Below are positions 18,315 to 58,468 of a stretch of DNA of 64,000 bases, one piece after another; position 1 is the first letter of the stretch; each line of letters begins with the position of its first letter. Both the position numbers and the translations under genes were made by a program. Where the stretch lies: contig NW_018407322.1 of the NCBI RefSeq assembly GCF_002113885.1, positions 1,105,026-1,169,025 on the forward strand, read 5' to 3'. This stretch comes from Mizuhopecten yessoensis. Taxonomy: Eukaryota. The notes below the pieces were generated by a model. It searched no databases. It was given only the letters and a program-made list of their open reading frames with translations, and was not told the DNA's origin.

Positions 18315-19998
18315 ATGACAAGGGAGTCTGATACCGCACAAGTTATAGAGTTTGATGAGGGACTGGCCGAAGCCAGTAGAGTTGCCATGGAAACCGGGAT
18401 GCTGACCCCACTGGTGAAAGAGGAACTCAAATACACCATACTATCCAGGAGGGAAGCGAATGGCAAAGGTCAAATAGAGGTCACGTTTGATGACCCTCAG
18501 CAATACCAGGTATGTCGTTTTGTAATTAACGTTTGTACTTGAATATTACATGTTAAGGGAAAACTTTATTTAAAGAAAAGTACCCCCTCCTTTTCCCTAG
18601 TCTTAGCCTATGTATCTAGGCAATATTCTCGTTGGTCATTATCTAGAACGATTCAATGTACCATATTTCAAGATAATTATTTAAACTGTGTTGGGTTATA
18701 TCTCAATCCTGAAATAAACTCCATTTTCTACCCGAACTCATGTTTTCTTAATAACGAGCTTGTAACACGATATATCTAATTATCTACATAATGAAATTCT
18801 TTTATCATAACGAAGATATCCATTGAACTTAACAAAAACACAACACGAAAATATGCAGACAAAAATGCAGGAGGCTTTACAGTAGCCAATCCTTTTCTGA
18901 GAACCTTATTAATTTATTCAATTCATAGAAAGACATACATAGAAATCGGAACAGTTACAGAATACATGTATAACTACGGAATGTTTCATAACATTCCCTT
19001 CATTTTTATAGTGTTCGGTCACTCTGAGATATGTATATCGAGATACGTAAAGGTCAATTAGGGATTAGTCTACAAATTAACGGGGTAAACATGACGTGAC
19101 GAACAGCACGTAGCACAAGGGTGATATGTACATGTAATACTGTTACGTCATTTTACCGTCATCACGTGTCCAGTTCTTCAACATATCCATTATTTAGTTG
19201 TTTCATTTAAACATTTTCTCTCTTTCTACGGTTTGTAAATGAAATGATTAAATGTATTTTTTATTTTACATTTTTTTAATTTCATTGGTGTATTCAAGTT
19301 CAAGTTGTTTATTGCCTTGAGTCTTTCGACTCATCAGTTTCGAAAATGAGATAGTTATAAACAATACAATACAATACCATACTCTGAATTGTGGCCATGT
19401 GTCTATAAACGCTTTATTTATCGGGTTTATTTACTTGACCAGTTGACCACAGAGGAGTTGGAGAAAGTGGAGAAACGGCGTCAACAGAACCGAAGTGCTG
19501 CCAGACGATTTCGTCACAGGCAGAAACAAACGTCACATGATTTCATCAAGGTAAAAGTGTTGATATTTCCCTGGCTTTCTTGTTTTACATACTGAGGTGT
19601 CTTTTATTATAAGATAGTATGATATTTATGGTGGATGTTGTGATGCGCTTACTTATACTTACTTATTATTAAGATAAAAACGTTTTATGCTTAACATGTT
19701 AGGTTTTTGACGTTTTAATTTCCATAAATAACGCTTCAAAAAGGAACTCAAATAACGCGCTAAATGTATTATTCGTATGCAACATTGTAACATGCTAATT
19801 TATAGGGTTTTGCTTATTTCATTCTAGAAAATCCAGTCTTTAGAATCCAACAATACGACGTTACGATCCGAACTTGAAAAGGTGAGCCGAGAGAAGGACG
19901 AGTTACAGCGAGAGTTACACGCACATTTACTTCACTGCCCAACTCTCGGGCTAAACAACACCCACCTCTGTCAGGAATATCATCTCTTCGAACAATAG
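18315..19998 (+). CDS. ATF3-like: ATF3/Fos-family bZIP transcription factor, paralog A; exons 18315-18509, 19443-19550, 19828-19998; 157 aa
   Basis: LTPLVKEELKYTI matches the ATF3 N-terminal LTPFVKEELRFAI motif. A 108-nt phase-0 exon carries the basic region KRRQQNRSAARRFRHRQK. The zipper IQSLESNNTTLRSELEKVSREKDELQRELHAHLLHC ends in the Fos/ATF3-type HxxxC. All introns are GT-AG. Confidence 0.92.
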
Positions 19999-20754
19999 GC
20001 CTACAGCTTCACGGGTCAGCTTCAACAAGACACTGGCTGTACACGTGTGTGGTGTCCCAGTACTGGACAAGCCTGCACTTTTTAACGGTTCCCAGTTGGT
20101 GCTACTGTACATTAACAAAACTGTCTACATGGACAAAAAACATGTCTACATTGATCATATTTAGGCGAAATACAACGTTACACGTTTTCCCTATGAATGT
20201 TGATTGTGGATCTGATATTAATGGGTTGTTCTAGAAATCAAGTGTTTGGTTCAAATTAATGATACTGAAACATATCAAAAATGTTATTTTTGTCTAGAAT
20301 TTAGTTAATTCTATATCGTAATAAAATAATAATATTGGACGTTTGTAGGTAGGATATAGTCAATCGAATTTTATAAAATGAACATGACATTGATTTTCGA
20401 TTATTTGTGACCACAATGGTTTGAACACTGAACAGTTTGTGTACAACCCTGGTGCTGTAACGGTCGCTCTACAGAATTCAGCCTCTATTCAAGAACATCC
20501 TTGATTGGATTTTTTTATGATTTGATCATTGGTGAATAGTAATTTTATTGATCTGTATGTTATTTACTTGAACGGTATTATGAATTCCAATTGTTTACTA
20601 TATAGAATCTTTTTTAATGTGTTTAAACAACTAAACCCCCTGTGATAACTTTTTACATTTGTCTATTTCACAATAAAATGTATGTTTATATGCTGTTGGT
20701 GTTTGATCTTATATCTACTTATATATCGTAAAGTGTGTATGTACTATCCAATAG

Positions 20755-22050
20755 CGAACATACGAGTACGTAGGGCATGTGTTTCACTACCTTACATTTA
20801 ACATACGAGCACGTAGAGCATGTGTTTCACTACCTTACATTTAACATACGGGTACGTAGGACATGTGTTTCACTACCTTACATTTAACATACGGGTACGT
20901 AGGACATGTGTTTCACTACCTTACATTTAACATACGGGTACGTAGGACATGTGTTTCACTACCTTACATTTAACATACGGGTACGTAGGACATGTGTTTC
21001 ACTACCTTACATTTAACATACGGGTACGTAGGACATGTGTTTCACTACCTTACATTTAACATACGGGTACGTAGGACATGTGTTTCACTACCTTACATTT
21101 AACATACGGGTACGTAGGACATGTGTTTCACTACCTTACATTTAACATACGGGTACGTAGGACATGTGTTTCACTACCTTACATTTAACATACGGGTACG
21201 TAGGACATGTGTTTCACTACCTTACATTTAACATACGGGTACGTAGGACATGTGTTTCACTACCTTACATTTAACATACGGGTACGTAGGACATGTGTTT
21301 CACTACCTTACATTTAACATACGGGTACGTAGGACATGTGTTTCACTACCTTACATTTAACATACGGGTACGTAGGACATGTGTTTCACTACCTTACATT
21401 TAACATACGGGTACGTAGGACATGTGTTTCACTACCTTACATTTAACATACGGGTACGTAGGACATGTGTTTCACTACCTTACATTTAACATACGGGTAC
21501 GTAGGACATGTGTTTCACTACCTTACATTTAACATACGGGTACGTAGGACATGTGTTTCACTACCTTACATTTAACATACGGGTACGTAGAAGATGTGTT
21601 TCACTACCTTACATTTAACATATGGGTACGTAGGACATGTGTTTCACTACCTTACATTTAACATACGGGTACGTAGGGCATGTGTTACACTACCTTACAT
21701 TTAACATACGGGTACGTAGGACATGTGGTTCACTACCTTACATTTAACATACGAGTACGTAGAGCATGTGTTTCACTACCTTACATTTAACATACGGGTA
21801 CGTAGGACACGTGTTTCACTACCTTACATTTAACATACGGGTACGTAGGACAGATGTTTCACTACCTTACATTTAACATACGGGTACGTAGGACATGTGT
21901 TTCACTACCTTACATTTAACATACGGGTACGAAGGACATGTGTTTCACTACCTTACGTTTAACATACGGGTACGTAGGACATGTGTTACACTACCTTACA
22001 TTTAACATACGGGTACGTAGGACATGTGTTTCACTACCTTACATTTAACG
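20755..22050. repeat. 43-bp minisatellite
   Basis: Unit acatttaacatacgggtacgtaggacatgtgtttcactacctt, about 30 highly homogeneous copies. Confidence 0.97.
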
Positions 22051-24639: not shown

Positions 24640-25120
24640 TAAACAACGAGATACACTACCACACGAGACACAAACATAACTTAACACACGAACAACGAGA
24701 TACACCAACACAAAACGAGACAAAAACATAACTTAACACACGAACAACGAGATACACCACCACAAGACGAGACACAAACATAACTTAACCCACGCACAAC
24801 GAGATACACCAACACAAGACGAGACACAAACATGACTTAACACACGAACAACGAGATACACCAACACAAGACGAGACAGATGTACAACTTAACACACGAA
24901 CAACGAGATACACCACCACCCGAGACACACACATAACTTGACACACGCACAACGAGATACACCAACACAAGACCAGACACATGTACAACTTAACACACGC
25001 ACAACGAGATACACCAACACAAGACCAGACACATGTACAACTTAACACACGCACAACGAGATACACCAACACAAGACGAGACACATGTACAACTTAACAC
25101 ACGAACAACGAGATACACCA
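24640..25120. repeat. ~52-bp CA-rich minisatellite
   Basis: Unit approximately aacttaacacacgaacaacgagatacaccaacacaagacgagacacatgtac, about 9 copies. Confidence 0.9.
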
Positions 25121-28100: not shown

Positions 28101-28344
28101 CAGTTGGCATTCATAGACAAAATTCAATGAAGCGCGCTAGTGCTTCATGTTGAATTTGCCTTTGTCCAGTTGACATCCATATTGCCTATGAATGCCAACT
28201 GAAAACAGTTCAATGCTTAAATAAATCCATGTCAATGTGTTCCGTGTGTGGAAAATATCAAAATGAAATGTGCCTATAAAACTCCAGTAGATATACTTAT
28301 ATGCATTCAATAGTATACACACTTCTATTCCTAGAACATCAACA

Positions 28345-28977
28345 ATGAGTCGAACATGGCAGTCATTTGTTTCCAAACGACGAAATCCTTCAAAGCGTGG
28401 AAAGGAATCGGCGTTGACATTCTGGGTTGTGGACCACACTTGGCAGTCAGGACTATTTGATCAGTTCGAAAAAGTCTGCAATACTGTGTTACAAGTAAAA
28501 CCTACCAGGGTATCTCCCCCTGAGATGGTTTCTTATTGTCAGACAAACCCAATGCGTATCAGCCGTTCGGAATACCCTCTTGTAACTAGGAATGTCGTTG
28601 GAGACGGCAACTGTTTTTTTCGGTGTATAAGTTACCTGCTGTGTGGTTCCGAGGAGCTACACATGGCTGTAAGGAACTGGGTTGTGTGCAATATATCTTC
28701 GCGGGATGTCGGGATGTCAGTAGCTCGCTATGTCCACAGTACCAGAATGGACAGAAAAGGAGTATGGGCAACTGACCACGAAATTATCGCCACAGCAAAC
28801 ATTCTAAATACTGATATCTTTGTGTTCTCTAAGTATGCAAGCGACTGGAAATGGATGGAATTCAGATGTAAGCGAAGAAGACGACGACGAAATATCCCAA
28901 AAAGGTCAATATTTTTGTATCACTATCGGCAGTGTCATTTTAAGATAGTATTTTCTGTAAGACATGTCGGACAGTAA
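28345..28977 (+). CDS. Intronless OTU-family cysteine protease (deubiquitinase-like) ORF, 210 aa, possibly transposon-derived
   Basis: OTU Cys loop VVGDGNCFFRCIS, helix motif H..VR..V, WATDHEI motif and C-terminal catalytic His in CHF. Also a basic KRRRRRR stretch, and a TATAAAA about 70 nt upstream. Confidence 0.75.
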   Translation: MSRTWQSFVSKRRNPSKRGKESALTFWVVDHTWQSGLFDQFEKVCNTVLQVKPTRVSPPEMVSYCQTNPMRISRSEYPLVTRNVVGDGNCFFRCISYLLCGSEELHMAVRNWVVCNISSRDVGMSVARYVHSTRMDRKGVWATDHEIIATANILNTDIFVFSKYASDWKWMEFRCKRRRRRRNIPKRSIFLYHYRQCHFKIVFSVRHVGQ

Positions 28978-29809: not shown

Positions 29810-31540
29810 CTATTACATTGATTGATACAGTACTATTACATTAATTAAAACAGTACTATTACATTGATTGATACAGTACTGTTACATTGATTGATACAGT
29901 ACTATTACATTGATTGATACAGTACTATTACATTGACTGATACAGTACTATTACATTGACTGATACAGTACTATTACATTGATTGATACAGTACTATTAC
30001 ATTGATTGATACAGTAATATTACATTGATTGACAAAGTAATATTACATTGATTAAAACAGTAATATTACATTGTTTAATACAGTACTATTACACTGATTA
30101 ACAATTAGTATTACACTGATTAATACAGTACTATTACATTTATTAATACAGTACTATTACATTGATTAACAATTAGTAGTACACTGATTAATACAGTACT
30201 ATTACATTGATTAAAAATTAGTATTACACTGATTAATACAGGACTANATATTACATTGATTGACAAAGTACTATTACATTGATTAACACAGTACTATTAC
30301 ATTGATTAACACAGTACTATTACATTGATTGACAAAGTACTATTACATTGATTAACACAGAACTATTACATTGATTGATACAGTACTATTACATTGATTG
30401 ACAAAGTAATATTACATTGATTGATACAGTACTATTACATTTATTAACACAGTACTGTTACATTGACTGATACAGTACTATTACATTGATTGATACAGTA
30501 CGATTACATTGATTGATACAGTACTATTACATTGATTGACAAAGTAATATTACATTGACTAAAACAGTACTATTACATTGATTGATACAGTACTATTACA
30601 TTGATTAACACAGTACTGTTACATTGATTAACACAGTACTATTACATTGATTAACACAGGACTGTTACATTGATTGACAAAGTAATATTACATTGATTAA
30701 AACAGTACTATTACATTGATTGATACAGTACTATTACATTGATTAACACAGTACTGTTACATTGACTGATACAGTACTATTACATTGATTAATACAGTAC
30801 TATTACATTGATTAACACAGTACTATTACATTGATTGACAAAGTAATATTACATTGATTAAAACAGTACTATTACATTGATTAAAACAGTAATATTACAT
30901 TGATTAACACAGTACTGTTACATTGATTGACAAAGTAATATTACATTGATTTAAACAGTACTATTACATTGATTGATACAGTACTATTACATTGATAGAT
31001 ACAGTACTATTACATTGATTAACACAGTACTGTTACATTGATTAACACAGTACTATTACATTGATTGACAAAGTACTATTACATTGATTTAAACAGTACT
31101 ATTACATTGATTAACACAGTACTGTTACATTGATTGACAAAGTAATATTACATTGATTAATACAGTACTATTACATTGATTGATACAGTACCATTACATT
31201 GATTGATACAGTACTATTACATTGATTGATACAGTACTATTACATTGATTAACACAGTACTATTACATTGATTAACACAGTAATATTACATTGTTTAATA
31301 CAGTACTATTACACTGATTAACAATTAGTATTACACTGATTAATACAGTACTATTACATTTATTAATACAGTACTATTACATTGATTAACAATTAGTAGT
31401 ACACTGATTAATACAGTACTATTACATTGATTAAAAATGAGTATTACACTGATTAATACAGGACTGTTATATTGATTATTGATTAAAACTGTATTATTAC
31501 ATTTATTTATACAGAACTATTACACCAATTAATACAGTAC
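29810..31540. repeat. 23-bp satellite, contains an N at 30247
   Basis: Unit actattacattgattgatacagt and variants, about 75 copies. Confidence 0.95.
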
Positions 31541-31854
31541 TGAAATAGTAAATCAATGTTAATTTGAATAAACAATTGCTTTCTTACTGAGTACATGTAG
31601 TCATTGGAACATTAAGTAATACATCACTATTGCATTAAGTAAGTAATACATACATGTAAGTATTGAACAAGTACATGTTATACACTACTTTACATTAGGC
31701 AGGTAATGAATATTTGCTATATTAAAAAAGAATAAGTCACTGTTATATTAAGTGAAGCAACACTGCCTCGTTATTTCAGCAAAACTGTATAGGTAACACA
31801 CCTCTGTTACATTGAGTAAATGATAAATCAATGTTACTTAAACTTAGATTTAAA

Positions 31855-33870: not shown

Positions 33871-35989
33871 TAGTAAAAATATTTAATAAAATCCTACAGT
33901 GATGTTTATTTAAATCAGAGATGCAGTACTGTTATAATGAGTAACGCATTACTACTTTTGAGTTAAGGGGTCTCAGAGACTTTCTAACGGCCTGACGTCA
34001 CCAGATAATGTCGTGATATCGGCACTAAACCGGAAGTCATCAGTGTCACGGCCGTGTTGTTGGACACGTGTCATACAGTCACATCAGTATATGTAATGGT
34101 ACAATACAACAACACAATAATCAGTAGGCAACAGTATCAGACAATATGTAAGGTTGTTCATACACTCCGACAGTTCGACCTTCTTCATTTATTAATGTTT
34201 TGCTAGAACTTTATATTTGAAAATGATTCAAATGACATGGCAATACGTCTTAACAAACAATTAAACAAAGTACAATAAAGCATTAGGTACAAACCAAACA
34301 AAAATACAGAACCGACACACATTTGAGTGAGCACTTACTTTACCAATTCAAAATAGACATGAGTGTGTTTTCCAGTTTTGGCCCCGTGTTTCACATCTAT
34401 CAGTTCCTGTCTGATACACAAACATATTCTTTTTAATGTGAGATCATATACTACGAGAAAAAACCTAATGAAGCCTTTATTTGGTCATATATCAAAAAGT
34501 TAGTTTCCGTTTATAGGTTTTATTCCAAAGATTTTCCTCGCATGCAAACTAACAATAATTGAGTTTTGTTTAGCGGAGTTAATGAGATGACATAAAATTG
34601 GGCTTTTCAAATCGCAATACTTACAATTTCGTGTATAGAAAACGAATAGGTTCTGTATTAGGATGAGAAACGGAATGCAGAATTGGTTCTGTAGTTTATT
34701 CATGTAATTGCATAGTTGCCGGAGGCTAGCTGACCTTCACATTACATTAAATAAGTATACAGTGTATTATCATTAAAAAACCCATTATAAACTGGAACCA
34801 ACTGTTAACAAATGTACCGAGCAAAACAGTTGTTTACTTTTCAATTTGCACAGCCGAATGGTTATTTATCAAGAGTGTCTAATGTGTTGACATCTTGTTA
34901 TAAAACATATATAACTCAAATGACTTTGTCTAGATTGAACCTGCTTCAAGCCTTAACATTAGTAGCCAAAAAAGACACCGTTACAAAGGGTTCATATCTG
35001 AAAGACTTCAGCCTACATTAAACAAATACAGGATTAGTCATCACGACTGATTTCAAACGTTCAAGTTCTCGCTTATAACTCTACTCATATGTCTAAGATA
35101 GTTTGATTTCATAGGATTTTTAACGCTTTTCCCTAGGAACTGTTTAACACCACCAGTTTTTGTCACGAAGAGGTCATAATGTCTTTCAGCATCAACTCTG
35201 AGCTCCTATTTGCTCTGCTACTTGTTTGGATACCCGTTGTCCGCCCTTTTGTTGCCGACTTATGATGTCTTTGTTTCGTTGTCACTTCTGTTGTTGTTAC
35301 TGTTCTGGCCTTGTCCTGATGTACAATGTAGTTGACGATACGGTGATTTATTTTACGTATTGCATAATCGATGCTTATGAAAATGTTTTGTGAATGCTTA
35401 CAGGTTTAACTGATAGACACGTCCACAAGGTCGCGCTAGGATCATGAGGATGCAATAATTCTGGAGGCTTCTTTGGTTTCTATGGAAACTGGGAGAATGA
35501 CACATATAATCAAACGGCTTACATTCCAGTCCTGACTGATACACCGCAGGTAAGCACCAAAGTTTTACAGGAGAATAATGGACGGAAAGCAATAATTTGA
35601 CGTATTAAGGACTTGAATAACATTATAAATATTTATGATGTAATGCAACACAGTACGTGGGCACCCCAAAGTGCGTTAAGAATATTACATTTTGAATGCT
35701 TGTATTTATATTAAGAAACTAAAATTAAGATTACCTTTTTTCTGTAATAATTCTAATGGTCCAGGTTATATTTAAAAAAAAAAAGATCAAATGACAGAAA
35801 ATATCTTTCATGGTGTTGCATTTAGCTACGATTAGTCAAATCAATAAAAACAAAATTCGTCAATATTTCAATTCGATGTCACTGCATGATTGGTCCCAGA
35901 TTGCCATAACAACAAACAATTTCTGATTAAAAACAAACAACAACAAAAATACACGTGATAATAATTTGACAAGTGGAGCAGTTAGTTTG

Positions 35990-36100
35990 CTATTTTCCCC
36001 TGTAACAGGATATACCACATCACATTGATATTTTCCCTGTAACAGGATATACCACATCACATTGATATTTCCCCTGTAACAGGATATACCACATCACATT
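35990..36100. repeat. ~38-bp tandem triplication
   Basis: ttttcccctgtaacaggatataccacatcacattgata, 3 copies. Confidence 0.85.
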
Positions 36101-36867
36101 CAGCAACAGACATCGCCTTAGAGCAATAGACAAATAGTTAACAAACTTGCTATGAAGCTTTCACATACTGCGTTACTTTTGTATTTTATCTGTGTCCTTT
36201 GTTAATTATTATATTTTCGAGAAAATCTACTAAAATTGTCTAAATTGTTACAAGAGCAATGTCAATTTTGATTTTGTTCATTTAAATTCTTGATAAGATA
36301 AGTCTAGTAGGTGGTAAACCCGCGGTTTAGACATATTCTTTACCCCCTGGTGGTATTTCCATATCCCTTTAACCTACATATGATATGATTTATTATGTAC
36401 ATACGGGCAAAATAGACTTTAGATATGCAAATTCAAGAAGGTGACGAATTATACATTTGCTATATAATGTAAATTAAGGAAATAATGCGTTAACTAATTT
36501 TGCATACACCTTTCATATTCATAGACAAAAAATATCTTTATATGCTTTTCAAACTTAGTTATACAATTGCATATGGTTTTATTATTTCTTGATATTTTTC
36601 ATATATCAAGAGTAAAATCCCGAGAAAATATTCCCTCCCTGCAGGTTTTGTAATAAAAAGTAAGATATGGAAAAAAACGTTCATTAGTCGTTTTTTTAAC
36701 AATCTTTTGCATTAAATCTGGGACAAAAACGTGAAATATTGACATCGGAAATAAATAGCATTGATTATTGTATCAATATTTAAATTATCATTTTACAGAG
36801 GATTCAACGCTTAGAATATGAAAAACACGTCTAAAATCCGAGTTGTCATTGCTTGTCGATGAAACAA

Positions 36868-37359
36868 GGGGAGTTACAGTGCCATCAGGATGAGTGTGGC
36901 TCGGGTATTTCTACAGGAGAGTTACAGTGCCATCAGGATGAGTGTGGCTCGGGTATTTCTACAGGAGAGTTACAGTGCCATCAGGATGAGTGTGGCTCGG
37001 GTATTTCTACAGGAGAGTTACAGTGCCATCAGGATGAGTGTGGCTCGGGTATTTCTACAGGAGAGTTACAGTGCCATCAGGATGAGTGTGGCTCGGGTAT
37101 TTCTACAGGAGAGTTACAGTGCCATCAGGATGAGTGTGGCTCGGGTATTTCTACAGGAGAGTTACAGTGCCATCAGGATGAGTGTGGCTCGGGTATTTCT
37201 ACAGGAGAGTTACAGTGCCATCAGGATGAGTGTGGCTCGGGTATTTCTACAGGAGAGTTACAGTGCCATCAGGATGAGTGTGGCTCGGGTATTTCTACAG
37301 GAGAGTTACAGTGCCATCTGGATGAGTGTGGCTCGGGTATTTCTACAGGAGAGTTACAG
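36868..37359 (+). repeat. 48-bp minisatellite derived from bZIP exon-3 coding sequence
   Basis: Ten near-identical units encode GELQCHQDECGSGIST, homologous to GKLQSDLEECGCAIST in paralog B exon 3. Confidence 0.92.
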
Positions 37360-40300
37360 TTATTCCAACAAGAGTTCGGAGTACGTATCATTGACAAAAG
37401 GTCCATTAGACCATCCAGCGAAGTAAATGGACAGGCTGACGGACACTACAAGGTCAGTGAAGCTGCTGTAAAACGAGAAATTTTCTCTGAGATAAATTGA
37501 AATAAGATTTTTTTTTTGTGAAGGGGGAATAGCAGAATAATCAGATAAATGGACGGGAGGATGAACAACGTTTCTATGTTTAATGTTTTATAGACGTCGA
37601 AGGGGACGTGTGTCAGACCTCAAACAGGACTTTTAAATACCTATATACACGTATATATTGTAATGTTTAGCTGAAGACAGCCATTGGTGAAGGTACTGAT
37701 TTTCTGCGTAAAGTAAAAATACAGTTATATGAAATCGGGAAGATATCTTTGTGAAATCGTCAATGTTTAAAAGAAGATGATTAGAACACCGAGTCTTCAT
37801 CACAGGGATGTGGCACGGATCTGCATTAATACACATAGTTTAGGACCGTGTGCTTGAGGGTTTTTTCTACGTTTAATCTGTACTTAAAATACTTACAAAG
37901 TGTAAACATACTATAAAACTATATATAACAGCACCCAATTGTATCTGTTAAAGATTTAATCTATTTAATACAGTGTGCTTTAGTTGCATCTTCTATAATG
38001 AACCCATTTAAAGGATTTCTGTTCAGTAAAAGCTATATTTCGATATATTATATTAATTTATTTTATACTTTATTAAATATACATTAGTTATACTATATTC
38101 ATTTAATTTATGTTTTATTTATATATTTAGACCCTTTTTAAAGAGATCTATCCACATATTTCCTGAACTTATTATTAACTCCAAGATGTTTGTGCTGATC
38201 TATTATTTTATTGAGATTGAAGTACAATTAAACTAAACGGGAGTTGTAGTAAGATACTCTCATGATTTAAGATTTGTCGGGGTGGAAAGGCAGTAGCCAG
38301 TCTTTAGACCATTTATCAAATATTCCTGTAAGTTTGCATTCACTACATACACAATGATGTCTAGTGTTTGTTAGGAGTATATCAATTCGTTTTAGTATGA
38401 TCCGATACATAGTGACTTAAGTCCAGTGGGTTTTGCAAAATGATCTAGGTATATTTAAATAATTAATTATATCTGTGAAAAGAACGAAATATTTCTTTTG
38501 TTTTCTATTTTTTTCATTGTCAGTCCTAGGAATTCAAAACATATAAACAAAGACCCGAGAAAAAACCCAAAAATGCTAAGAACTGATTTCTACATTATCT
38601 TTGGATTCCTGATTGATATATTAATATATCGTTGTAAAAACGGGACAAGACAATACTGCACAAATTTATGTTAGTCCCGGAAGACAATCAAGCACTTATA
38701 TGATAATCATAATTACAATTGTAATACCAGAACACTCGCTACTATACCGTAGTCTGACATAGCTAATCGATAACACCCATATATAAACAGTGTGTAGTGT
38801 GGTTTTCTTTTGTATCACAGGTAGGTCACACATACACATAACGTAGTGTATACACCTCACTTAACGTAGTAAGATATCTATTTATAGAGTCATACTTGTA
38901 GTTATATATTGATACCGGCTTTAACCGGTTTAAACCGGTTACTCGAGTGGAACTTATCTGATACCGACTTTAACCGGTCTAAACCGGTCGCGGTAATGGA
39001 ACCTCTTGAATCAGTAATTTCTAAAAATAGATATATGCTGACAAAACAAAATTACCTCCCTTTATTTTAGTATTTTATAGTTAATCTTGGTCAGTGAGAT
39101 GATTTCAGAAAACGTCCGGTCAAATTTTCTGTGACTCTTTACGTTGGATGTATTTTGGACTTACCACATATACAGAATTGTATTAATGAATGTAAGTATA
39201 AAATCCACTTAATTAAAAATATATTGTTTGGTGTTTTTGGTATTATTTTTGAAAGTTAGAGATATGTATTGACTGCTAATGTTTTCGCTAATGTTAGTTA
39301 TACTATTGATATCGATATCAGAAATAGAAACCACATCAAATCCGAGGAATAATACTGGCTATGAGGGCATATGGCAGTCACCTCGTAATGTCATCGTTCT
39401 ATTCGTTCTATTTAAAGTCCCCCCCCCCCCCCCCCCCCCCANCCCCGATAAATCATAATAATTCAATGATCAACCGATCGACTGACAAATGATCCTAGCA
39501 CAATAGCATCGTTGTCGTCTGCCAACAGATCGTCTCACTCCTCATTTTATATTGATTGTCGACTATGAAGATGTTGCTTTATATATACCGTGAGGAGTAT
39601 TTTACCTATGGAGTGATAAACAAGCGAAAGCGGTAAATCAAATAGCCCGTTGTCAAGGACAACTGTAGAATATATTTACTTTTTTATTTGCAGAAAATAC
39701 CATATCAATACCAAGTTGAATGCACATCATCATACATGTATAGACAAATTATCATAATCACTGATGAAACCCGATTGTAATCGGAATAATAAATTCATAT
39801 GACATGAGCAACTCTGCTACAGTCTAATATATATCAAAGCCTATATAAAAACCGTGTACCAGAGGATTCCCTTCAAAATTTTACGTAAGTCATTTGATTT
39901 TCCACTTACTTTCGATTTAAATACATATTGCTACTAGTGCTATAGAGAGTATTTGTTATATTTACAAGATCAAAAGAAACGTTGCCATTCTGCATCAAAT
40001 GCTTACTGAACTTACTTAAGGTTAGTAAGTAAACTTTCAATTCTGAAATAGCAAGAAGTCGATTGCAACTATATCCAAAATATGGTAATCTTATAAGTAA
40101 ATGCATTTTTCTTTGTATTGTTTGATTACATTGTATGTCTTGATTTGACCTTCAGTATTTCAGCCGATATCTCCATGTTTTGTTGTATTACATGTATCAA
40201 AAGCAGTGAACATGTTTTCTTTTTCTTTTTCCAACCATTTTGAAAGAACTCGTTAAACTCATGATATTGTGATTTAGAATGAAATTCATCATTTTGAAAT

Positions 40301-41475: not shown

Positions 41476-42788
41476 ATGGCAGAACCATTAACAAATAATC
41501 CTGACGATTATGAAGATGCCAAAATGCATGAGGCTGCTTTGGTTGCTATGGAAACGGGGAACATGACGCCAATAATCAAACAGGAGTTACGGTGTTTAAT
41601 ACAGTCTAGACGTTTGGCAGAAGGCAAATCTGAATTGTACGTCGATTTCGTACCTCCGGTGATGACAGAGGTAGGCGCGATGTTTTATTAAAAGAAATGG
41701 GATGAAAGGTTGTGATACGACCTATAATACTAAGGATTGTACAACATGTTTTTTTTTGTTTTTTTTTGTTGTTTTTTTTTGTATTCGTTCCTGAAAAAGA
41801 TTAAAGAAACTTTTTTTTTCATGTGACGGACACGACTTTTTTCTGGAAAAGGTCGAGTTTCCTATAATTACCATTTTGGTTAGGTGACAAATTCTATCAG
41901 AAACCATTCGACTGATTTTATGTTAATTATACCATGGCTATGCATGCAATTTTTGCTTTTGCCCGAACGATTCCTTGGTTAATTTGTACATTATCAGTAT
42001 GAATTCATATCATGGTTTTAAAATGTACGATGATCTGCATTGAACATGTTTTATGCAGAAAATTGTAAGTTATAATGTGACTGTTTGATACTTTGTATTA
42101 TAAAATAATGTGTACGTAACAAAATTCTGATGGAGAATACCTTGTTTTTATGATATCTATTTGTTATATTATTTACTTGTTTAACAGCTTACACCAGAAG
42201 AACTCTTAAAGAAAGAAAACAGACGGGAACAAAACAGAATAGCGTCCAGAAAATTCCGGAGAAAGCAGGCATTCTCGATAAATAAATTCAAGAAGGTGAC
42301 GAATATAAAATTCAACGTTAAATGCATGTGTTATTTATTTTTTGCACACATACTCTATGATTAATATACGAACACATGAAATTGATATGTTTAAACTAAT
42401 TGCTCATTTGTATATAATTGCATCCATTTTTTTATGTCATTTTCATTCAAGATTAAAATACCGAAAGCATATTTTCCTGGAATGTAATCTGAATGAGTAA
42501 ATAATATTTTTTTTAGTAATATATTGAATCTGAATAAAAAAAAGTTGAAATAATGGAACCGAAAAGTAGTGTTTATTATTATTATTTTTTTTTTTTTTTT
42601 AGAGAATTCAACGCTTGAAATCTGAAAACACAAGACTATCATCAGAGTTGTCATCACTTGTCGAGGAAACAAACTCTTTACAAGGAAAGCTGCAGTCTGA
42701 TCTGGAGGAGTGTGGCTGTGCCATTTCTACAGTAGCGTCTGACCCACAAAGTGCTGGAGTATATATCATAAGTAAAAGGGCCGTATAG
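41476..42788 (+). CDS. ATF3-like: ATF3/Fos-family bZIP transcription factor, paralog B; exons 41476-41670, 42188-42295, 42603-42788; 162 aa
   Basis: MTPIIKQELRCLIQSRR motif; 108-nt basic exon LTPEELLKKENRREQNRIASRKFRRKQAFSINKFKK; zipper RIQRLKSENTRLSSELSSLVEETNSLQGKL. Introns are GT-AG, phase 0. A probable non-coding first exon ends at 39884 (TATA 39842), with the acceptor at 41467. Confidence 0.9.
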
Positions 42789-42824
42789 CCGTTAAACCAA
42801 GCAAATGGACTGACAGACATATGA

Positions 42825-43013
42825 TATATAAACTGAGTCAATGGAGCCTGGTATGTATACTGAGTCAATGGAGCCTGATATATATACTGAGTCAATGGAG
42901 CCTGATATACATACTGAGTCAATGGAGCCTGGTATATATACTGAGTCAATGGAGCCTGATATATATACTGAGTCAATGGAGCCTGATATATATACTGAGT
43001 CAATGGAGCCTGN
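42825..43013. repeat. 27-bp minisatellite with one AP-1 site per unit, ending at an N
   Basis: Unit tgagtcaatggagcctgatatatatac; TGAGTCA starts at 42834, 42861, 42888, 42915, 42942, 42969 and 42996. Confidence 0.95.
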
Positions 43014-47800: not shown

Positions 47801-49643
47801 ATCTCTCTTATTACCAGGGGCCACATATGGGCTTCACCTATCGGGCTAAAAATGGTTAAATTATATTATGTGATACTTTTGTTTTCAGGTGGAGGTTATA
47901 TAAGTATTTATACTACCATGATTGTACCGTTGACTTAGATAGCGTGTTAATGCACACATAAATAAGACATATTAATAGCAATATTCATATTGAAATTATT
48001 TCAATGCTTCGATTATCCTTACATTTGTATAACATACGGATTTGTATGTGGCAATAGCCCATGTGTAACAATGTATGTCTTTTTATCTACTATAATAACT
48101 GTCATTGTAAGAATACTAGTATACATATGTTATGTATCGCGTTGGAATGATTTTGCGAATTATATAGAGCGTTCCACAAATGTTGTATACGTTTCTATTT
48201 AATATTGACTATATATTGCTTCCTATCGGTACCGATGTTAAAACAACTTCCTCGATATCCTGAGCTATACATAGTTTTGGTTGTTTCCGTGTGCTATTTT
48301 AAGAAAACATGTTCACCTTTCGTAGTTATTGTGTTACATCGTTTAATATAATACACGATCTAGAGGCAGTCCGAAGAACAGTAAATCTATTTATATTGCT
48401 GACGAAACTGTTGCGATTGGGAGGGGACAAGACAAGCTGGTCTATGACTTTATGAAATGTTGCAGGGAATATAAAAGCTGCAGGTAATACATAGATACGA
48501 ATATTGCATATGTAACCGAAAAGAGATGTAAATGATCGACATAATTGCACACCGTTCCTGTCGGCGTTTCTAGCCCCTACACACACGTGTTAGACATAAC
48601 TACCTGTGTGTTTTATCAATGTATGTAGCGCTGCCTTACGCTGACCTACTTGGCTGTCAGGGCTCAATATAAACTGTGTATTACTATGTTTGCTACAACT
48701 TGCTGACTACAGAGAATGCAGAGCTTATACGTACGTGTGTGTAGATGGGTGTATTTTAAGTATTTCGTGTCATGCTATTAAAAGCTGACCAAAGTATGGT
48801 ATTAAGAAGTTTACATACACCTATGATTTTGTTTACTGAAGGTTTCGTAGATGTTAACGTCTGAGTAAATATATCACAACAATAGTAACGTGTACACCGG
48901 TACCTGTATCGGAGCAATGTAACAATGTGACATGTTTGGATTTTTTTACATAGACATGCATATAACATGATAGCATTGTTAATATTTACATACAATTTAT
49001 GTATAGCTTAGACAAATCAAGATATCATTTTGAGAGAAAAAAAGAAGTTATTTGATTTGATTCATGTCTCTGAGACAACTGATATGTAAAGAAATTTAAT
49101 TCAAAGCATAGCCACAGCGGAATAGAACTACCACGCTGGCGCATCAGGGCGACTCGACATGTGCTAAAGACGATAAATTATCGCTACACCCAGACAAGTC
49201 TTTGGCAGATTATTATCACCGTGCATTGCATCTTTGTTAAACTTGTAAACGTAAGGACTGGACAGTGACTATAACTCTTGAAAAACTGCGTCACCAATCA
49301 ACAAAAACCAGAGCTTAGGGTTATAAAACGATTAAATGTTGCTTATAGCCAACACGTTGATTGAAAAATTGTAAGATTAGCAGAAAAACTGTAAATGCAC
49401 TGAGAGACCATATGCCGTTGATTTCCTTACAGTCAGTCGGATTTGGATTCTGTTCCGTTCATTATCATACACTATCCATCTGTGTTTATGATATAATGCC
49501 GTATGAAATATTTTTTAACATGAATTGTGTGTTAATAATGCGTAAATATGACGAATAATCAATACGTTTTTCTATGGGATCTCATAACGAATGAGCAAAA
49601 GTAGCGACTGGATTTTAACTTTATATATATATCAGAAACCATA

Positions 49644-50604
49644 ATGGCTGTAAACCTCACCGAAGTGGATCCCAGTGACGAAGAAGAGTGCAAGCTAGCA
49701 GAGGCTGCTCTAGCCTGTTATGAATCAGGATGTCTTACTCCACTGATCAAAGAAGAATTGAAGTACAAAATACATACAAGACGGATGGAACAGGGCAAAG
49801 GGGAACTTCAGGTCCAGTTCACTGCCCCGGACAGATCTGAGGTTCGTTTTAACTGATTAAATTCAAAATAGATATATAATAATATCAAGACACAGTGGCA
49901 TAATAATATGCAGTGTATTCCTGGCAGACTGTATCTTTTACAAATTTTTAAAGGTACAGTCATAGGCGTGTGTGTGTTTTAGGATCATCTTTCAAAGTAG
50001 GTAGGGATGATACCAGAACAAAACCAAAGACACCTTTTATCATTAACAAAATTGTTTCAGTTTGTTTTATCCTAGTTACCTGTGTGAATATCATGTAACA
50101 CTGTTAAAGCGAATAAAAAAAGAACAAACTAGACAAACAAGGTTTAATGCTAACACTTATTACCGGTAAACGACCATTTCTTCTACAGCTGACAGCAGAG
50201 GAAGTTCTGAAGTCAGACAGAAGACGACAACAAAACCGACAAGCAGCACGAACGTTTCGCGAACGGAAGACGACATCGGCAGCTACTATGAATAATGTAC
50301 GCTATTTAATCATTTAAGTTTTACTCTATTGGAAAGAAACTGTGTGAAAAGTATGATTCTTTTTTCGAAAATTTTTTTTAACATAAAAAAGCCTATTCAC
50401 TCCTTGATATTCTAAGTAATGAAATATATTTATTATACGATATATTTATTCTTTTACGTTATTTTACAGACGTTGCAGAAATTACAAACTGACAACGCTC
50501 GACTTAACGCTGACATTGAAAGACTCGTCATGGAAAAGGAATTTTGGCAAGGAAAACTAAATACACTGCTGCTTAGTACAATAGAGGGTTATTTAGACTC
50601 GTGA
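49644..50604 (+). CDS. ATF3-like: ATF3/Fos-family bZIP transcription factor, paralog C; exons 49644-49841, 50189-50296, 50470-50604; 146 aa
   Basis: LTPLIKEELKYKIHTRR motif; 108-nt basic exon LTAEEVLKSDRRRQQNRQAARTFRERKTTSAATMNN; zipper TLQKLQTDNARLNADIERLVMEKEFWQGKL. Introns are GT-AG, phase 0. Confidence 0.9.
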
Positions 50605-53600
50605 TATTGAGACCCAAAACAACATCAGGATGTTCAGTATGTGCTTCAAACATAATGACCTTAAGATATGTGGTAGACACGACATTGCATCAAACTTCTA
50701 CGGTCTTTATTGGCCATTAATCCCACTCGGAATCTTACTAACGGATTTTACTGACGATTTGTCAAACGTGCATCATGTCTCTAGTCCGATGAAGTATTAT
50801 CATTGTGTGGAACCGTATTCAGGTATTTTACACATGCGGGGAGGAGTGTCTTTGCATATATAGAACCTCCAGAGTTAAGAGACTTTAGTTCCCGAACAAA
50901 ATCAGCAATGTCGAAGGTTCTGGATCGATCAATGTATAAAATAATATAAACACAGCTCGTGAGTAACATACGATATGTAAATGTTGTAGATTGGTGTTGC
51001 CTTGATCAATCAGACTTCACTATGACCTTACAAATACATACACAGTTGGTGTATAGTTAGAATGACATGTAAAGCTGCTTTACTGCCCGTATCTCATGAT
51101 TCCTTTAATATATACTTTTACGGATAGTTAGATGTCAGGTGATGACAAAGTGTCTCTCCAGTTAATGATGTCTAACGTCTAGGCGTGTTTTATGTACAAC
51201 TTACAGTGCTATGTAGTAATGAGTGCAGATCTGAACTGTCGCGTTTACCCATTACATCACACAGTTCTTCCATGTCTGATGTGTCCAAACGTGAAAATGA
51301 TTCTTATAAAATGTTATCATATTGAAGATTTAAATGAATGTATTTTGATAATTTCCAATGCTCCGTGTGATTTAATGAGTGATTGTAAATGAATATGGGA
51401 CCCTTAATGGACGTGCACCCTCGATTGGATCAACAGGTTTGACTTGGTGCGTGATGGTGTGTTTTTGAGATATTGAATGTATTATTATATTATCGATATG
51501 TTTTATTTGTTACAATTTTTATGTATAAAATATTGAACTTTGATTTTGTTTTGTTTGTCATCATCACATGAATCAGTCGTTATCTCACACATTGTTTACA
51601 AGTAAAACCAAAACTGATTTCTAGCACGTGTTCATTAACATGCCCTTACTGATGTGATATGAGAGCAAGAATAACACGACGTGTTTGTGTGCGAAACGAC
51701 AGCGAGAAGAACCGAGCAGACCCCACAGAATGAATTCATGGAAGAAACATGTTGACTCCCTTCCACTCCCCTCCTCACCCCATACCCCACCCCCGACACA
51801 GCATGTGGTGCCCTATGTAACGTCGGTCTCTAATTATATTCAGCAAAATAATTTTTCCGTCATAAGCTAAAAAAACTCTTAGTTGGAAAAATCTTGTGTG
51901 TGTATGTAAGTACGTAAGTACGCTGTAGGCAAGTGGTGACACCATCCTAACATTAGGTTCGTCGAGTTGTTTTCATTTAAGTACAAAATACTTAATTGCA
52001 GTACACTGCTGACATGTACAGTGTTCCGTTAACGTTTGAACAAAATGTCAATTGTACTTGACCTGTTTGTGGTCACGGGGTCATCGTCAGGCGTACTCAA
52101 GAATTAGGGGTGAATGTGTAAACGTTCTGTTGATTTACATACACCGCTACAATAATCGTGTAGTAGGTATATAAACAGGAAAACGAAACTTATCATCCCC
52201 GTAATGCGTTATCTACAGTGTGGAGTATTTATTGTCAGGGGTAAAAGTGAAACAACGTCAATGTTCTCGGAATCAAGGTATGGATTCTTTCTGCATTTGC
52301 GTACTAAAATGTGGTGTGTCCCATCACTAGAGTACCACAAAAGCATTACTGTAAAAAATGACCGTTATGGAGTGACATAGACATCGATGATAAGACTATA
52401 GACATGTAAGTTTTAACTATTTATGTTTGGTCTATATTAAAAATATAGTGTGCTCATTTGTATGTTTTTTTCTTTTTGTAAATATTACTAAGAAAGAGAA
52501 ACGAAAAATGACCTCTGTTAACTATTTTCAGAACGCACATAACTATACTATGGAACATCAGGTCCATAGGAAACTTGCTCTTAATTTAAGCGTAACGATA
52601 TCCTGTCTGAACGGTATTCAATAAATCACTTACCAGATGACAACACATATTCCATCGTATGCAGGTATGCATTAATGACTACTGAGACAATAATAGAATA
52701 ACCCTTCGGTGGTGAAATAGACATACGTTACATACCTGTGTTGTATTATTTCATCACAGCTATTTCTGGCACTATATCAGGTTGATTTTGAATACACTGT
52801 ACCTGCACCTTGTAAATCTCGTATGATATTGGGACAAAGGATGTGCACTATCCTCGTACAGGAAGGCATTCTTCTCATTACAATCGTAAAAAGGTCCAAA
52901 AACCACCAATATTCATCTTCAAAGGACTAGGTTGAAATGCATATGACATTTGACCAATGGAGATATAAATGAATAATAAAAAATATATAACATTACAATT
53001 TCAAATTTTAAGAAATAACCCGAATGACGACAACAACAATAAATATTTAAAGTATATATATATTTGATCAAATCAGAGATAAACGTATGGTATGCGTTTT
53101 ACGCAATTCTTTCTCCGGTTTATTTATAGATACACTATAAGGAAATTTCCAGCGACAAAGTAATAACCTGATGCAATATTCTCTACAAGCAGTTCGAACT
53201 TTCTAGACTAAGGAAGACTTTCAGCTGGTAGAGAAGTTCTTCAGGGACAGAATCAGGAGCACGTGCAATCATTCGATAATAAATCAGCCACGAGCTGTCT
53301 TTCACTTGGATTAGCAGCTTATTGACCTCGATATGTCGTGTATTTCAGACGTTCGCTGAGAAGTGCAATGTATCGATTTCGAGTTATGAGGAGAAGCACC
53401 GACTGAAGTAAGTTAGACACACGAATAGTTTCATGTGATCTGGAAACTGTGTACAGTAAGATCAAATCGTAGATTTTGAAAATGTTCCAAGAAACAGAAA
53501 CTTGGAGGAAACATCATTAACAAAGAGTAATTAAAGCACTACATAGTTCATTTTGTTTCTCCTTTATGAAACTGTTCCAGATCGATAGAATTTATAGTTT

Positions 53601-55325: not shown

Positions 55326-55942
55326 AGGTAGCAGTGTACAGTAGCGTACGGTGGCCATGGGTGATATTTTTGTACAATGAATAACCCATGTAATATTACA
55401 TGTATCAAAGTTTTAAAACAAAGCAGCACTAGTATTGGCATATACATGATCAAGTGGACTATATGGGCTTCACTTTAAAAAAAAAAATCGATTTTGGTCT
55501 GAGACTTTATTTTTATGTCATTTAAAAATCTGTGTCTACACAACAAAAGCTAGCTTTCCATGTAGTCTATTTTTGTACTCAGTATATGTGTAAATATTGT
55601 GAAAAATCCAGTTGAACGACCTATGCTAAATCGTGAGTATTTCTGTTACCGAGTAGTTGACATTCAACTTAAGACAGGTATTAAGAAAAGTTTGGGTTAA
55701 AAATCATGTTATTTTTGCATTTTTTGGTGTTTTTTGATGTGGTAACCATGGTTTTCACAAGTGCCAAATCTGGGGAAATCACTTTTTGGAAAAAAATGCA
55801 TTCTTCCAAAAAAATAATAATTTCAAAATGTAGTTTTTAAGTATATACAGTGTGTTGTGCAGGATATATCCCCTATCCGTGCTTATCTGAGACATGCCCT
55901 TTATTTTAAGGATCAAGCCATTTCTACTGTACTCTGCTACCT
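55326..55942. mobile_element. Non-autonomous TIR DNA transposon (MITE), possibly Kolobok-type
   Basis: Left end aggtagcagtgtacagtag vs reverse complement of the right end aggtagcagagtacagtag (18/19). The flanks are degenerate TTAA-like and there is no ORF. The superfamily is inferred from the RR terminus and TTAA context. Confidence 0.6.
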
Positions 55943-57862
55943 TACGTTGTCGTCCATTTAATATACTTAAACAACTATCACATTAACCATCATTCATAAT
56001 ATACATTGAAGAAAAAATAGAAGTATACTCCTCTTTTACATTACAAATGGTGATGGACTTGACAAACTATGTCGTTATCAACTGCATTTGTTGTCGTTTT
56101 CCGAAAAAATAATAATAATGATGTTATTTTATTATGATATTTTATTTTCAGTTATTTTCTTTTCACGGTAATGCTTTTGTTCATCAGTTAACAGTTTTTC
56201 CCCACATTTCTGTGTTCTTTCGTTATAACCGTCGCAACCTTGGTGTAAATATGCTCCTTTTCTGGTTTTACCTTTGACAGTGTAGATAATATAGCAATTC
56301 TTTTCTCTCAGTACCTTTTGCTGGATTATTTAGCAAGACTAATAAGCTTAATGGTTTTTAAATTCTTGTATTATAACGATTTCCTATTAATTTTCATGTC
56401 GTTTCATGTTCTGTATAATGAAATTTCAACTCAACAAAAAGGTTTCTCTGTCACTTTTTGTCTGTGAAGAAGTTTTATTAAAGCTCCAAGCTTCAGGTTC
56501 GAATTTCTTTTTCATTAAGCATAAAACAAAAATCAAAATTATAATCGCAAAACATAGACGGCGAATTTTTCACACGCTTTTAATACATATCTTATAGCAT
56601 GAAATGGTCCATTCCTTATTTATTAGCCGTAGATTTCTACTGAATCCTAAATGCCAAGGAATGAAGTTGGTCTTTTTTTTAAAATTTGTACACGTTTTCA
56701 GTGTAAATATGTTAACACTTTTCGATGTTTCGTTATCAAGTTTGACCTGGACGTTTATAATACTCCTCAATATGATACAATAAACAACGATTGGGAGTTA
56801 TCCCCAACTATAGATATTGCTGAGGATTTTTGCATATTAATTCCGACATAAATCTTCATCTTCTGCGAAATTGTTTTAGTCGTGAAGATTATACAATGTA
56901 TCAGCTTGAGAATGAATCAGGCGATATTTGCTCTGTAATGGCTGCAACTGCATATGGCTATCGCAGCAACCATAGGCAGTGTCATTACCAACTGCATTGC
57001 AGCAAAATACATACATGTAATACGCATCTCCTTCATAGTAAGTTTGCAGCATAACAATTAGCACATCTATAACACAGAAAAGACATTTGAAATCAGTTCA
57101 ATAGCTATATTATTTTTGTCCAAGGCTTTATCATTTAAATTCCAAGCAACGAAACTTCTAGAAAGAAGATTTGCCTGATTTAACAGTGTCATGATATGGG
57201 CATGTTGACATCATGAACATATTTCAGGCTTTTTATTATTATAACGTCGTAAATATGTTCGTGTTACAGTTTCGAAACTAAAAATACAAATTGCATTTAA
57301 GTCGTCATAGTGTTCCAACTGTCTTATTTCCACGTCATCTTTTAGATTTGACTTGTGTCAGTCATATTTTATTTTGTCTCTGATTGGTTGAATTGGTTGG
57401 GGAGAAAACGCCATACCTATTTATAGATAATATCTGTTTAACCGACGAACATTTTGTCGGTTTTCCAAAATAGTTACATCATTTCTAAAAATATATAAAA
57501 GTGCTGACGCATTTATTGGACGGTGTAGACGTGGTCTGTTATCATTTGTAGACAGTCGTCCAAGTTAGGGGCATTCGAACACAAGAGATTATGTAAATGT
57601 CTCCTCAGTTCTGTGGTTGTAAATTTAAACTGCTTTTGCTCAAATGGTTTCTCAGTAGTCAAAACTTTCTTAATATTGAAAAATATGTATCCTCACATTA
57701 AAACATATCGTTATACGGGACATTAAGAACAACAAATTTCCCTTTTGTTTGTTTGTTTTTCTCCTGATTTAGTATTAGGTCAGTTTACACCGACTATAGA
57801 ACTCTTTTCGAAACAACTAATCTTTACATTCTTTAAATATGACCTTGACGTTTTCAGATATA

Positions 57863-58391
57863 ATGGCTGCGGCTTCAGCCCATGGGTATGGTCTGGTGGA
57901 TGACAAGTTGGTTAAGGCCACACAAGAATGTCTGGACACAGGCAGCATCATGCCGATGCTCAAGGAAGAACTCAGATGTACTATACAAAACAGACGACTA
58001 GCGGAGGGCAAGACAGAACTGACCGTTCAATTCACACCCCCAACAGAGCAACAGGTGAGTTGAATCAACCTTTAATAAGGATGTGAGTTGACGGTATTTT
58101 CCCTATGGTATCATTGTGTGTAAATACTGTGGTGATTCTTCCTTTTCCACTTCACATAGACTTATTTCATAAATAAATTTATCATTGAAATTCCAAAAAT
58201 GAAGTTTATTGATGTAACACGGATAACCGTATTAATTGAAATCGATGTCTTTTTAACAATGACTACATGCCCTTCCCTTACAGCTTAATGCAGAAGAGAT
58301 CATAAAGAAGGAAAACAGAAGGGAACAGAACAGAAGAGCAGCACGAAAGTTTCGCCAGAAACAAGCTACATTATCTCAAAACTTCCAAAAG
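57863..58391 (+). CDS. ATF3-like: ATF3/Fos-family bZIP transcription factor, paralog D, partial; exons 57863-58054 and 58284-58391; zipper exon not found in the window
   Basis: IMPMLKEELRCTIQNRR motif; 108-nt basic exon LNAEEIIKKENRREQNRRAARKFRQKQATLSQNFQK. Acceptor ttttcag at 57851-57857; candidate TATA at about 57493 and non-coding exon donor at about 57593. Confidence 0.87.
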
Positions 58392-58468
58392 GTAGCGTCT
58401 AAATGTTCTTCTATCTCATGCCTTCCAAAGGAAAATATAACACTCGTAGGTAAAAATACACAATAGTT

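Follow-up and report, generated by a model that had tools for sequence, protein, structure and literature searches.

A stretch of 64,000 nucleotides from the scallop Mizuhopecten yessoensis (scaffold C3995:1105026-1169025) contains four genes for small basic leucine zipper (bZIP) proteins, which we call g1 to g4, all on the + strand. The whole stretch is referred to below as the window, and positions are counted from its first letter. The ATF3 lineage, to which a first reading made from the sequence alone (the sequence-only reading) assigned these genes, has one or two genes in vertebrates. The locus raises the question of what the four genes are and whether they arose by rapid turnover or form an old and stable group. 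Our analysis indicates that the window most probably holds a conserved tandem array of four functional and transcribed genes, encoding bZIP proteins of 144-162 amino acids that are derived paralogs of the ATF3 lineage, together with one dead duplicate of g2. The genes are already in RefSeq, and the cluster is real and ordinary, lying within a family expansion in molluscs.

Gene models and transcripts

A six-frame scan with the motif [ED][TS]G.[LMIV][TM]P..K.EL[KR] matched the N-terminal modules (N-modules) of all four genes on the + strand and had no other match in the window. The longer form of the motif given in the sequence-only reading fits the four genes, but five residues and not three stand between 'EA' and '[ED][TS]G'. 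The exons encoding the N-modules (N-exons) match each other at E 1e-10 to 1e-15 in tblastn searches within the window, with N-module identity between paralogs of only 40-53%. Each gene has three coding exons: the N-exon has 64-66 codons, the basic exon is always 108 nt long, and the third exon encodes the zipper. All coding junctions in g1-g4 have AG and GT borders and are in phase 0. The motif scan, tblastn and the exon borders thus bear out the claim of four same-strand genes with a common phase-0 three-exon layout. The proteins have the N-x7-R basic region and in-register heptad leucine repeats of the bZIP superfamily (PF00170 / PF07716). In Pfam searches, bZIP_1 and bZIP_2 match the basic exons alone at E 4e-6 to 1.5e-3, and full-length g2 carries precomputed annotations for both PF00170 and PF07716. 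The N-exons alone gave no Pfam family and no usable ESM Atlas match. The exons of the four genes are as follows.

18315-18509, + strand: g1 coding exon 1 (N-module, 65 codons); from motif and tblastn, with the same length (195 nt) in the Pecten ortholog P0072
19443-19550, + strand: g1 basic exon (108 nt, phase 0, ..QNRSAARRFR..); bZIP_1 E 4e-6
19828-19998, + strand: g1 zipper exon with a TAG stop at its end; from tblastn and border reading
41476-41670, + strand: g2 coding exon 1 (65 codons); from motif, tblastn and RefSeq XP_021359964.1
42188-42295, + strand: g2 basic exon (108 nt); from tblastn, Pfam and RefSeq
42603-42788, + strand: g2 zipper exon with the stop at its end; from tblastn and RefSeq
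48425-48483, + strand: g3 non-coding 5' exon; from RNA, with a defined 3' end and an approximate 5' end
49636-49841, + strand: g3 exon 2 (ATG 49644; coding 49644-49841, 66 codons); from RNA joints
50189-50296, + strand: g3 basic exon (108 nt); RNA joints on both sides, bZIP_1 E 4.8e-6
50470-51771, + strand: g3 zipper exon (coding from 50470, stop 50602-50604) and 3' untranslated region (UTR); from RNA, with a longer form to about 52390
51880-52278, + strand: g4 non-coding 5' exon; from an RNA contig, donor GT 52279
57858-58054, + strand: g4 exon 2 (ATG 57863; coding 57863-58054, 64 codons); from RNA, motif and RefSeq XP_021359923
58284-58391, + strand: g4 basic exon (108 nt); from tblastn and border reading

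The three-exon model of g2 is letter-for-letter RefSeq XP_021359964.1, and both g2 and g4 correspond to RefSeq "ATF-3-like" proteins. For two paralogs at other places in the genome, too, the models are identical to RefSeq. The single N letters at 30247, 39442 and 43013 were kept unchanged. Heptad and tblastn scans of the remainder of the window (58392-64000) did not find the zipper exon of g4, which lies 250 nt beyond the window end (L029:250-384) and is used by the RefSeq g4 proteins. The second intron of g4 is consequently long, about 5.9 kb against about 1 kb in Pecten. The array had been suspected to continue past the window; it stops there, apart from this last exon of g4. Position 58391, which the sequence-only reading gave as the end of the array, is the end of the g4 basic exon.

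Transcripts are available for g3 and g4. Contigs of X1 and X2, two probable RNA runs from different studies, show g3 spliced at 49841/50189 and 50296/50470 as predicted. The 5' joint of g3, 48480>49633 (GT..AG, cut +3), is found in X1, X2 and two raw X24 reads, the joint 49839>50187 (cut +2) in X1 and X2, and the joint 50296>50470 in X1, X2 and X24. The raw stranded reads of this third study, X24, back two g3 joints and the + strand. The g3 contigs extend to 51771 and, in the case of X2, to 52390. A contig of X1 spans 51880-52281 and continues in the start-codon region of g4, with donor GT 52279 and acceptor AG 57856-57857. Because this contig joins the 5' exon to the coding exon, coding exon 1 of g4 comprises 64 codons from ATG 57863; it begins by splicing at 57858, and the first ATG of the open reading frame (ORF), at 57839, is not the start. 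The expectation of spliced transcripts therefore held, with g3 spliced as predicted and the 5' exon of g4 joined to its coding exon.

The non-coding 5' exon of g4 (about 51880-52278) overlaps the long form of the g3 3' UTR (to 52390). The neighbours g3 and g4 may share or compete for transcription across 51880-52390.

Age and selection

In Pecten maximus (LR736840.1), each of g1-g4 has a 1:1 ortholog, and the four orthologs share the order and strand of the Mizuhopecten genes, with spacers of about 13.5, 4.5 and 6 kb and basic exons that are also 108 nt long. Orthologs of g2 are present in Pecten maximus (73% identity), Ylistrum balloti and Argopecten irradians. Between Mizuhopecten and Pecten, the ratio of nonsynonymous to synonymous substitution rates (dN/dS) is 0.10 for g1, 0.20 for g2, 0.19 for g3 and 0.23 for g4, with dS of about 0.9-1.5. 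Pecten synteny and the low dN/dS therefore indicate that the array is old, stable and under purifying selection, and the divergence among the copies reflects age, not turnover. The birth-and-death turnover claimed in the sequence-only reading does not agree with the four ordered Pecten orthologs, and the sole 'death' in the array is one g2 duplicate that is absent from Pecten. The family is expanded in molluscs, and the array is not a species-specific expansion, with orthologs in Pecten, Ylistrum and Argopecten.

The one pseudogene that had been noticed in the array is confirmed as a decayed duplicate of g2. It spans 35437-37500, between g1 and g2, and retains three parts.

35437-35549, + strand: N-exon remnant that has lost the ATG and about 60 internal nt; it contains in-frame stops but still has the donor GT
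36429-36453, + strand: basic-exon remnant, the last ~13 nt and the donor, the rest missing; 96% identical to g2 42284-42307
36798-37500, + strand: zipper exon with a frameshift, a stop and a 48-nt x 10.3 tandem repeat (36867-37360)

The zipper exon of the pseudogene is 77% identical to Mizuhopecten g2 and 66% identical to Pecten g2, and no remnant was found in the g1-g2 spacer of Pecten. Since it is nearer to Mizuhopecten g2 and absent from Pecten, the duplicate postdates the split of the two lineages in both its origin and its decay. The 48-nt repeat unit corresponds to the zipper end and the Cys-rich tail, its 10.3 copies show 99% matches, and their expansion (36867-37360) has produced a long repetitive reading frame that is open on the + strand.

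The wider family

The N-module was found on five further scaffolds of the genome, C1799 (1 copy), C2660 (3), C1607 (2), C2665 (2) and C5067 (2), in addition to haplotig copies. The g1-g4 array is one of at least six clusters, and the family has at least 15 genes in this genome. The basic exon is 108 nt long with AG/GT borders in all other paralogs but one, in which it has 111 nt.

The sequence-only reading had proposed a search for the N-module across molluscs. A profile of 14 N-exons, searched against 1.84 billion representative proteins, gave 527 clusters at E<=1e-3 and 268 at E<=1e-10. The module was found in bivalves (scallops, Pinctada, Solemya, Sinanodonta, Mya and Mercenaria) and gastropods (Aplysia, Lymnaea, Batillaria, Babylonia, Plakobranchus, Haliotis and Patella), and also outside molluscs in the annelids Capitella and Ridgeia and the starfish Acanthaster and Patiria.

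A tree was made from a 129-column block of 77 proteins and rooted on the starfish proteins. In it g2, g3 and g4 form a starred clade with their scallop orthologs (96/80). The g1 gene and its Pecten ortholog stand just outside, in a polytomy with the C1799 gene, a Pinctada gene and gastropod genes of the Phe type described below, and this polytomy joins the g2-g4 clade at 95/72 in a joint clade that is uniformly Phe-type. A single clade for all four array genes and their scallop orthologs is not rejected by the approximately unbiased (AU) test (p-AU 0.51). The paralogs group together and do not fall into different old bZIP families, an outcome that would have spoken against the sequence-only reading.

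The fifteenth member, at C2660:68.2-69.4 kb (L042 = C2660:67515-70619; exons at about 850-994, 1501-1608 and 1860-1994), has a weak N-module, a Cys-type 108-nt basic exon and an ATF3/JDP2-like zipper and tail. The same scaffold carries three expanded paralogs about 32 kb downstream of this member, which is a possible source of the expansion. The paralog C1607b (L031 = C1607:101000-110999, basic exon 792-899) has a degenerate basic region, ..KQNKKSTKRIRQ.., and its zipper exon was not found. Because a related protein of another species (P0048) has Val there too, C1607b may represent a lineage that has diverged, and not a pseudogene.

The N-module and the relation to ATF3

In more than 60 full-length family members, the Pro of the motif stands 49-52 residues before the Asn of the basic region. 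With this fixed spacing, N-module and bZIP make up a single conserved block of about 115 residues. An AlphaFold model made with the family alignment (predicted local distance difference test score 88) has N-module helices at 9-27 and 31-48, an ordered linker and a bZIP helix at 68-138. Foldseek pdb and VIA wide searches with this model gave generic long-helix matches only, and none for the N-module. Each protein is a compact unit of an N-module predicted to have two helices, a basic region and a five-heptad leucine zipper.

An antibody table that prints the N-terminal portion of human ATF3 shows LTPFVKEELRFAI in it (PMC6795555). Compared by eye, the human segment LTPFVKEELRFAI and the g1 segment LTPLVKEELKYTI are identical at 9 of 13 positions. 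In human ATF3 the motif lies 57-58 residues before the basic Asn of RRRERNKIAAAKCR, with a linker slightly longer than that of the scallop proteins. All four window genes carry the N-terminal motif of the ATF3/JDP2 type (..TP-x-VKEEL-x3-I.., in that type some 50-60 residues upstream of the basic region), and starfish RefSeq 'ATF-3-like' proteins match the full-length family profile at E 1e-23. The shared N-module core of human ATF3 and the starfish match support the earlier description of the locus as a tandem array of ATF3-related bZIP genes. Protein searches with g2, a 35-sequence family alignment and a starfish ATF-3-like protein recovered only molluscs, an annelid and starfish, and no vertebrate sequence.

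The window genes resemble vertebrate ATF3/JDP2 in encoding small proteins with an N-terminal core motif about 50-58 residues before the basic Asn, and in a zipper that has Asn at a2, is acidic at the g positions and leads into an H..C tail. They differ in having Phe instead of Cys in N-x2-AA-x2-C-R, an Arg/Gln-rich basic region (RREQNRxAARKFR) where ATF3 has RRERNKIAAAKCR, a linker that is 6-9 residues shorter, and four tandem copies with at least 15 family members against one or two genes. Human ATF3 has a non-coding first exon and three coding exons, with a basic exon of 36 codons; a literature search found no paper giving this layout.

The Fos family belongs to the same bZIP subgroup as ATF3 (PMC4736632). 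The window genes share with it a basic exon that starts L-[ST]-P-E-E and has Asn at exon residue 16, and an acidic zipper, which would favour heterodimers; unlike Fos proteins, they lack a long C-terminal transactivation region, possess the N-module and have Phe for Cys. Exon 3 of c-fos is 108 nt long and starts LSPEE. The Maf/CNC bZIPs also have a conserved folded helical module at a fixed distance N-terminal of the basic region, such as is predicted here, but the scallop module is not similar in sequence to the Maf extended homology region or the CNC domain, and this likeness is an analogy only. BATF and BATF3 are likewise small, essentially bZIP-only proteins, and RefSeq gives this name to several orthologs; however, the scallop family has an ATF3-type N-module, which to our knowledge BATF lacks.

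The zipper has five heptads, with d positions F/M-L-L-L/V-L/W that start 18 residues after the Asn. Position a2 is Asn, the g positions are acidic and the e positions neutral, and an H-x3-4-C tail follows. The g1-g4 proteins would bind DNA as dimers. Analysis of the e and g positions predicted 0-1 attractive g-e' pairs in homodimers, and heterodimers would therefore be favoured, as with Fos and ATF3. To judge from the zipper residues, the likeliest partners would be Jun-like zippers with basic e positions.

Phe at a DNA-contact position

The signature of g1-g4 is N-R-x-A-[AS]-R-x-F-R, in which Phe replaces the Cys/Ser of N-x2-AA-x2-[C/S]-R. This replacement of Cys, which the sequence-only reading did not mention, is the most unusual feature of the array genes, which do not have the canonical Fos/ATF3 signature N-K-x-AAA-K-C-R with Cys. 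The Phe-type signature N-R-x-AA-x2-F-R is also found in 43 of the 60-odd full-length family matches, and Cys is kept in the annelid and starfish members and in five scallop paralogs.

With the g3 basic exon alone, the best match among solved structures was the fungal Pap1 of S. pombe (PDB 1gd2), at E 0.1. Pap1 and Yap1 have Phe at the same contact position, as seen in QNRAAQRAFRKRK of g3 and QNRQAARTFRERK of Pap1, but they have Gln for the second Ala (A-Q-x2-F-R), where the scallop genes have Ala or Ser. The Yap/Pap1 signature N-x2-A-Q-x2-F-R is thus incomplete in the scallop genes, with Phe present and Gln absent. The likeness to Pap1 is convergent and concerns one contact residue, with no common descent beyond the bZIP superfamily.

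The Phe would remove a redox-sensitive Cys and may shift half-site preference towards the TTAC type read by Pap1/Yap. A tentative and rather doubtful proposal is that Phe for Cys defines a mollusc-wide class of ATF3-derived bZIPs in which the redox Cys was lost, a TTAC-like half-site is read and the N-module serves as an ancillary domain next to the basic region. If this were true, the array would supply heat- and stress-driven heterodimer partners that rewire AP-1/CRE (cAMP response element) target choice in molluscs.

Regulatory elements

Two conserved elements lie upstream of g1.

17770-17787, + strand: four-unit heat-shock element (HSE, TTCnnGAAnnTTCnnGAA), 545 nt upstream of the g1 ATG
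18037-18086, + strand: g1 core promoter block with a conserved TATA box (TCTATAAATAG), 82% identical to Pecten

The window contains no other four-unit HSE, and none occurred in 100 shuffles. In Pecten maximus the four units are all preserved, 494 nt before the ATG of the ortholog. The TATA block is one of only two blocks upstream of g1 that can be aligned with Pecten. HSF1 activates ATF3 in vertebrates. Heat-shock factor would drive at least g1 through the conserved HSE, and the array would act in stress-responsive transcription, by analogy with ATF3 in vertebrates. For the stress or immune role suggested in the sequence-only reading, the conserved HSE of g1 is the sole evidence.

Other candidate sites were rejected. 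A kB-like site, GGGAATTTCC, at 18038 belongs to a motif whose count is at chance level, and it is not conserved in Pecten. CRE sites (TGACGTCA) number 3 against 0.9 expected, with none near promoters. A 27-nt x 7.1 minisatellite at 42822-43012, starting 34 nt past the g2 stop, has a perfect AP-1 heptamer TGAGTCA in each unit and holds seven of the nine TGAGTCA sites of the window. It was rejected as a conserved autoregulatory element, being absent downstream of the Pecten g2 ortholog, and because of this absence it is lineage-specific and probably incidental.

Neighbouring features

A Cys-rich exon at 15091-15429 (+), an eclosion-hormone-like candidate, has a counterpart with 86% protein identity 8 kb upstream of the Pecten g1 ortholog, and therefore the upstream synteny is conserved. 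An intronless ORF of 210 amino acids at 28345-28977 (+), between g1 and the pseudogene, encodes an OTU cysteine-protease domain (Pfam E 3e-7). In Pecten it also lies between the g1 and g2 orthologs, with 75% amino acid identity and dN/dS 0.15, and is absent from the called genes of the locus. It has the look of a conserved gene that is missing from the annotation, and not of leftover transposon sequence.

At 1125-1385 (+) lies an exon of Arpin (Pfam PF10574, E 2e-15), which was not found in the Pecten stretches examined. A zf-RVT remnant, the zinc-binding C-terminus of a retroelement reverse transcriptase, is located at 17414-17572 (-) with E 3e-4. A second candidate remnant of this kind, at 59953-60183 (-) in the second intron of g4, is zf-RVT-like by eye and has no Pfam hit.

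Discussion

Several points weigh against the reading of g1-g4 as functional, stress-responsive paralogs of the ATF3 lineage. The tree has no vertebrate ATF3, JDP2 or Fos in it, and orthology to ATF3 proper is at most putative. The member at C2660:68.2-69.4 kb is nearest to the annelid and starfish proteins by path length and is probably a better candidate for the canonical ATF3/JDP2 ortholog. RefSeq names for the family conflict, being ATF-3-like, BATF3, fosB-like, cap'n'collar or uncharacterized. The best solved-structure match of the g2 bZIP is JunD (E 1.4e-5), not Fos; we read this match as a consequence of the NRIAS motif of g2 and not of family membership. The Phe-type genes as one clean clade are weakly rejected (p-AU 0.026), with at least five changes. 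Among the four genes the HSE stands upstream of g1 only, and the RNA support covers g3 and g4.

The genes might instead be a separate old branch of the Fos/ATF3 group, specific to lophotrochozoans, with an N-module that predates the split between Fos and ATF3. The Capitella member P0130 combines a Fos-like zipper start (..LQAETAELED..) with the N-module, the names in RefSeq vary between ATF-3-like and fosB-like, and Jindrich & Degnan traced ATF3 to a duplication of Fos in the bilaterian stem lineage (PMC4736632), all of which would fit such a branch. However, the core motif also occurs in human ATF3, about as far from the basic region, and the starfish ATF-3-like proteins match the full-length profile (E 1e-23). 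As we also know of no vertebrate Fos protein with the core motif of the N-module, we consider a separate branch unlikely. It is very improbable that the genes are Jun-like or BATF-like bZIPs misnamed ATF-3-like by the RefSeq pipeline. The N-module is common to the family and human ATF3, the layout of three coding exons with a 108-nt basic exon starting L-[TS]-P-E-E is unlike Jun, as vertebrate Jun genes are intronless, and the zipper has acidic g positions of the Fos/ATF3 type with neutral e positions, unlike Jun, and the H-x3-4-C tail. Against these stand a phmmer search of g2 against solved structures, in which JunD and c-Jun came first (E 1.4e-5 to 6e-3) and Fos reached E 0.2-0.4, and the name BATF3 of some orthologs.

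Two further explanations concern the age and the integrity of the array. We give very little credence to a young, fast-turnover expansion specific to the species or genus, in which the divergence of the copies reflects rapid or adaptive evolution. The recent dead duplicate of g2, absent from Pecten, and the low identity of the paralogous N-modules (only 40-53%) would be expected from it, but the 1:1 Pecten orthologs keep order and strand, orthologs occur in Ylistrum and Argopecten, dS of about 0.9-1.5 with dN/dS of 0.10-0.23 indicates purifying selection, and by the tree the Pecten genes are not independent duplicates. It is scarcely credible that some of the copies, or even all of them, are relics without function or artefacts of annotation: four open frames with intact splice sites, dN/dS well below 1 and conserved orthologs, the transcription and splicing of g3 and g4 and the RefSeq models of g2 and g4 argue against it, although one copy is clearly dead (35437-37500), the second intron of g4 is unusually long (about 5.9 kb) and contains retroelement debris, and the RNA support covers g3 and g4 only. 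A conserved array of functional ATF3-lineage paralogs with one dead g2 copy therefore remains our preferred explanation.

A literature search, with most subscription journals outside it, found no paper on the array, a mollusc ATF3/bZIP expansion, the Phe variant or the RefSeq accessions. The inconsistent RefSeq names for the family should be unified. Phe at the contact position offers a simple testable hypothesis of changed DNA specificity, and a clean conserved array with defined gene models and the g1 HSE allows a direct test of stress induction paralog by paralog. Expanded stress-gene families are a known trait of bivalves. Our result adds a family of regulators to these expansions, with at least 15 genes in the scallop and hundreds of sequence clusters in molluscs.

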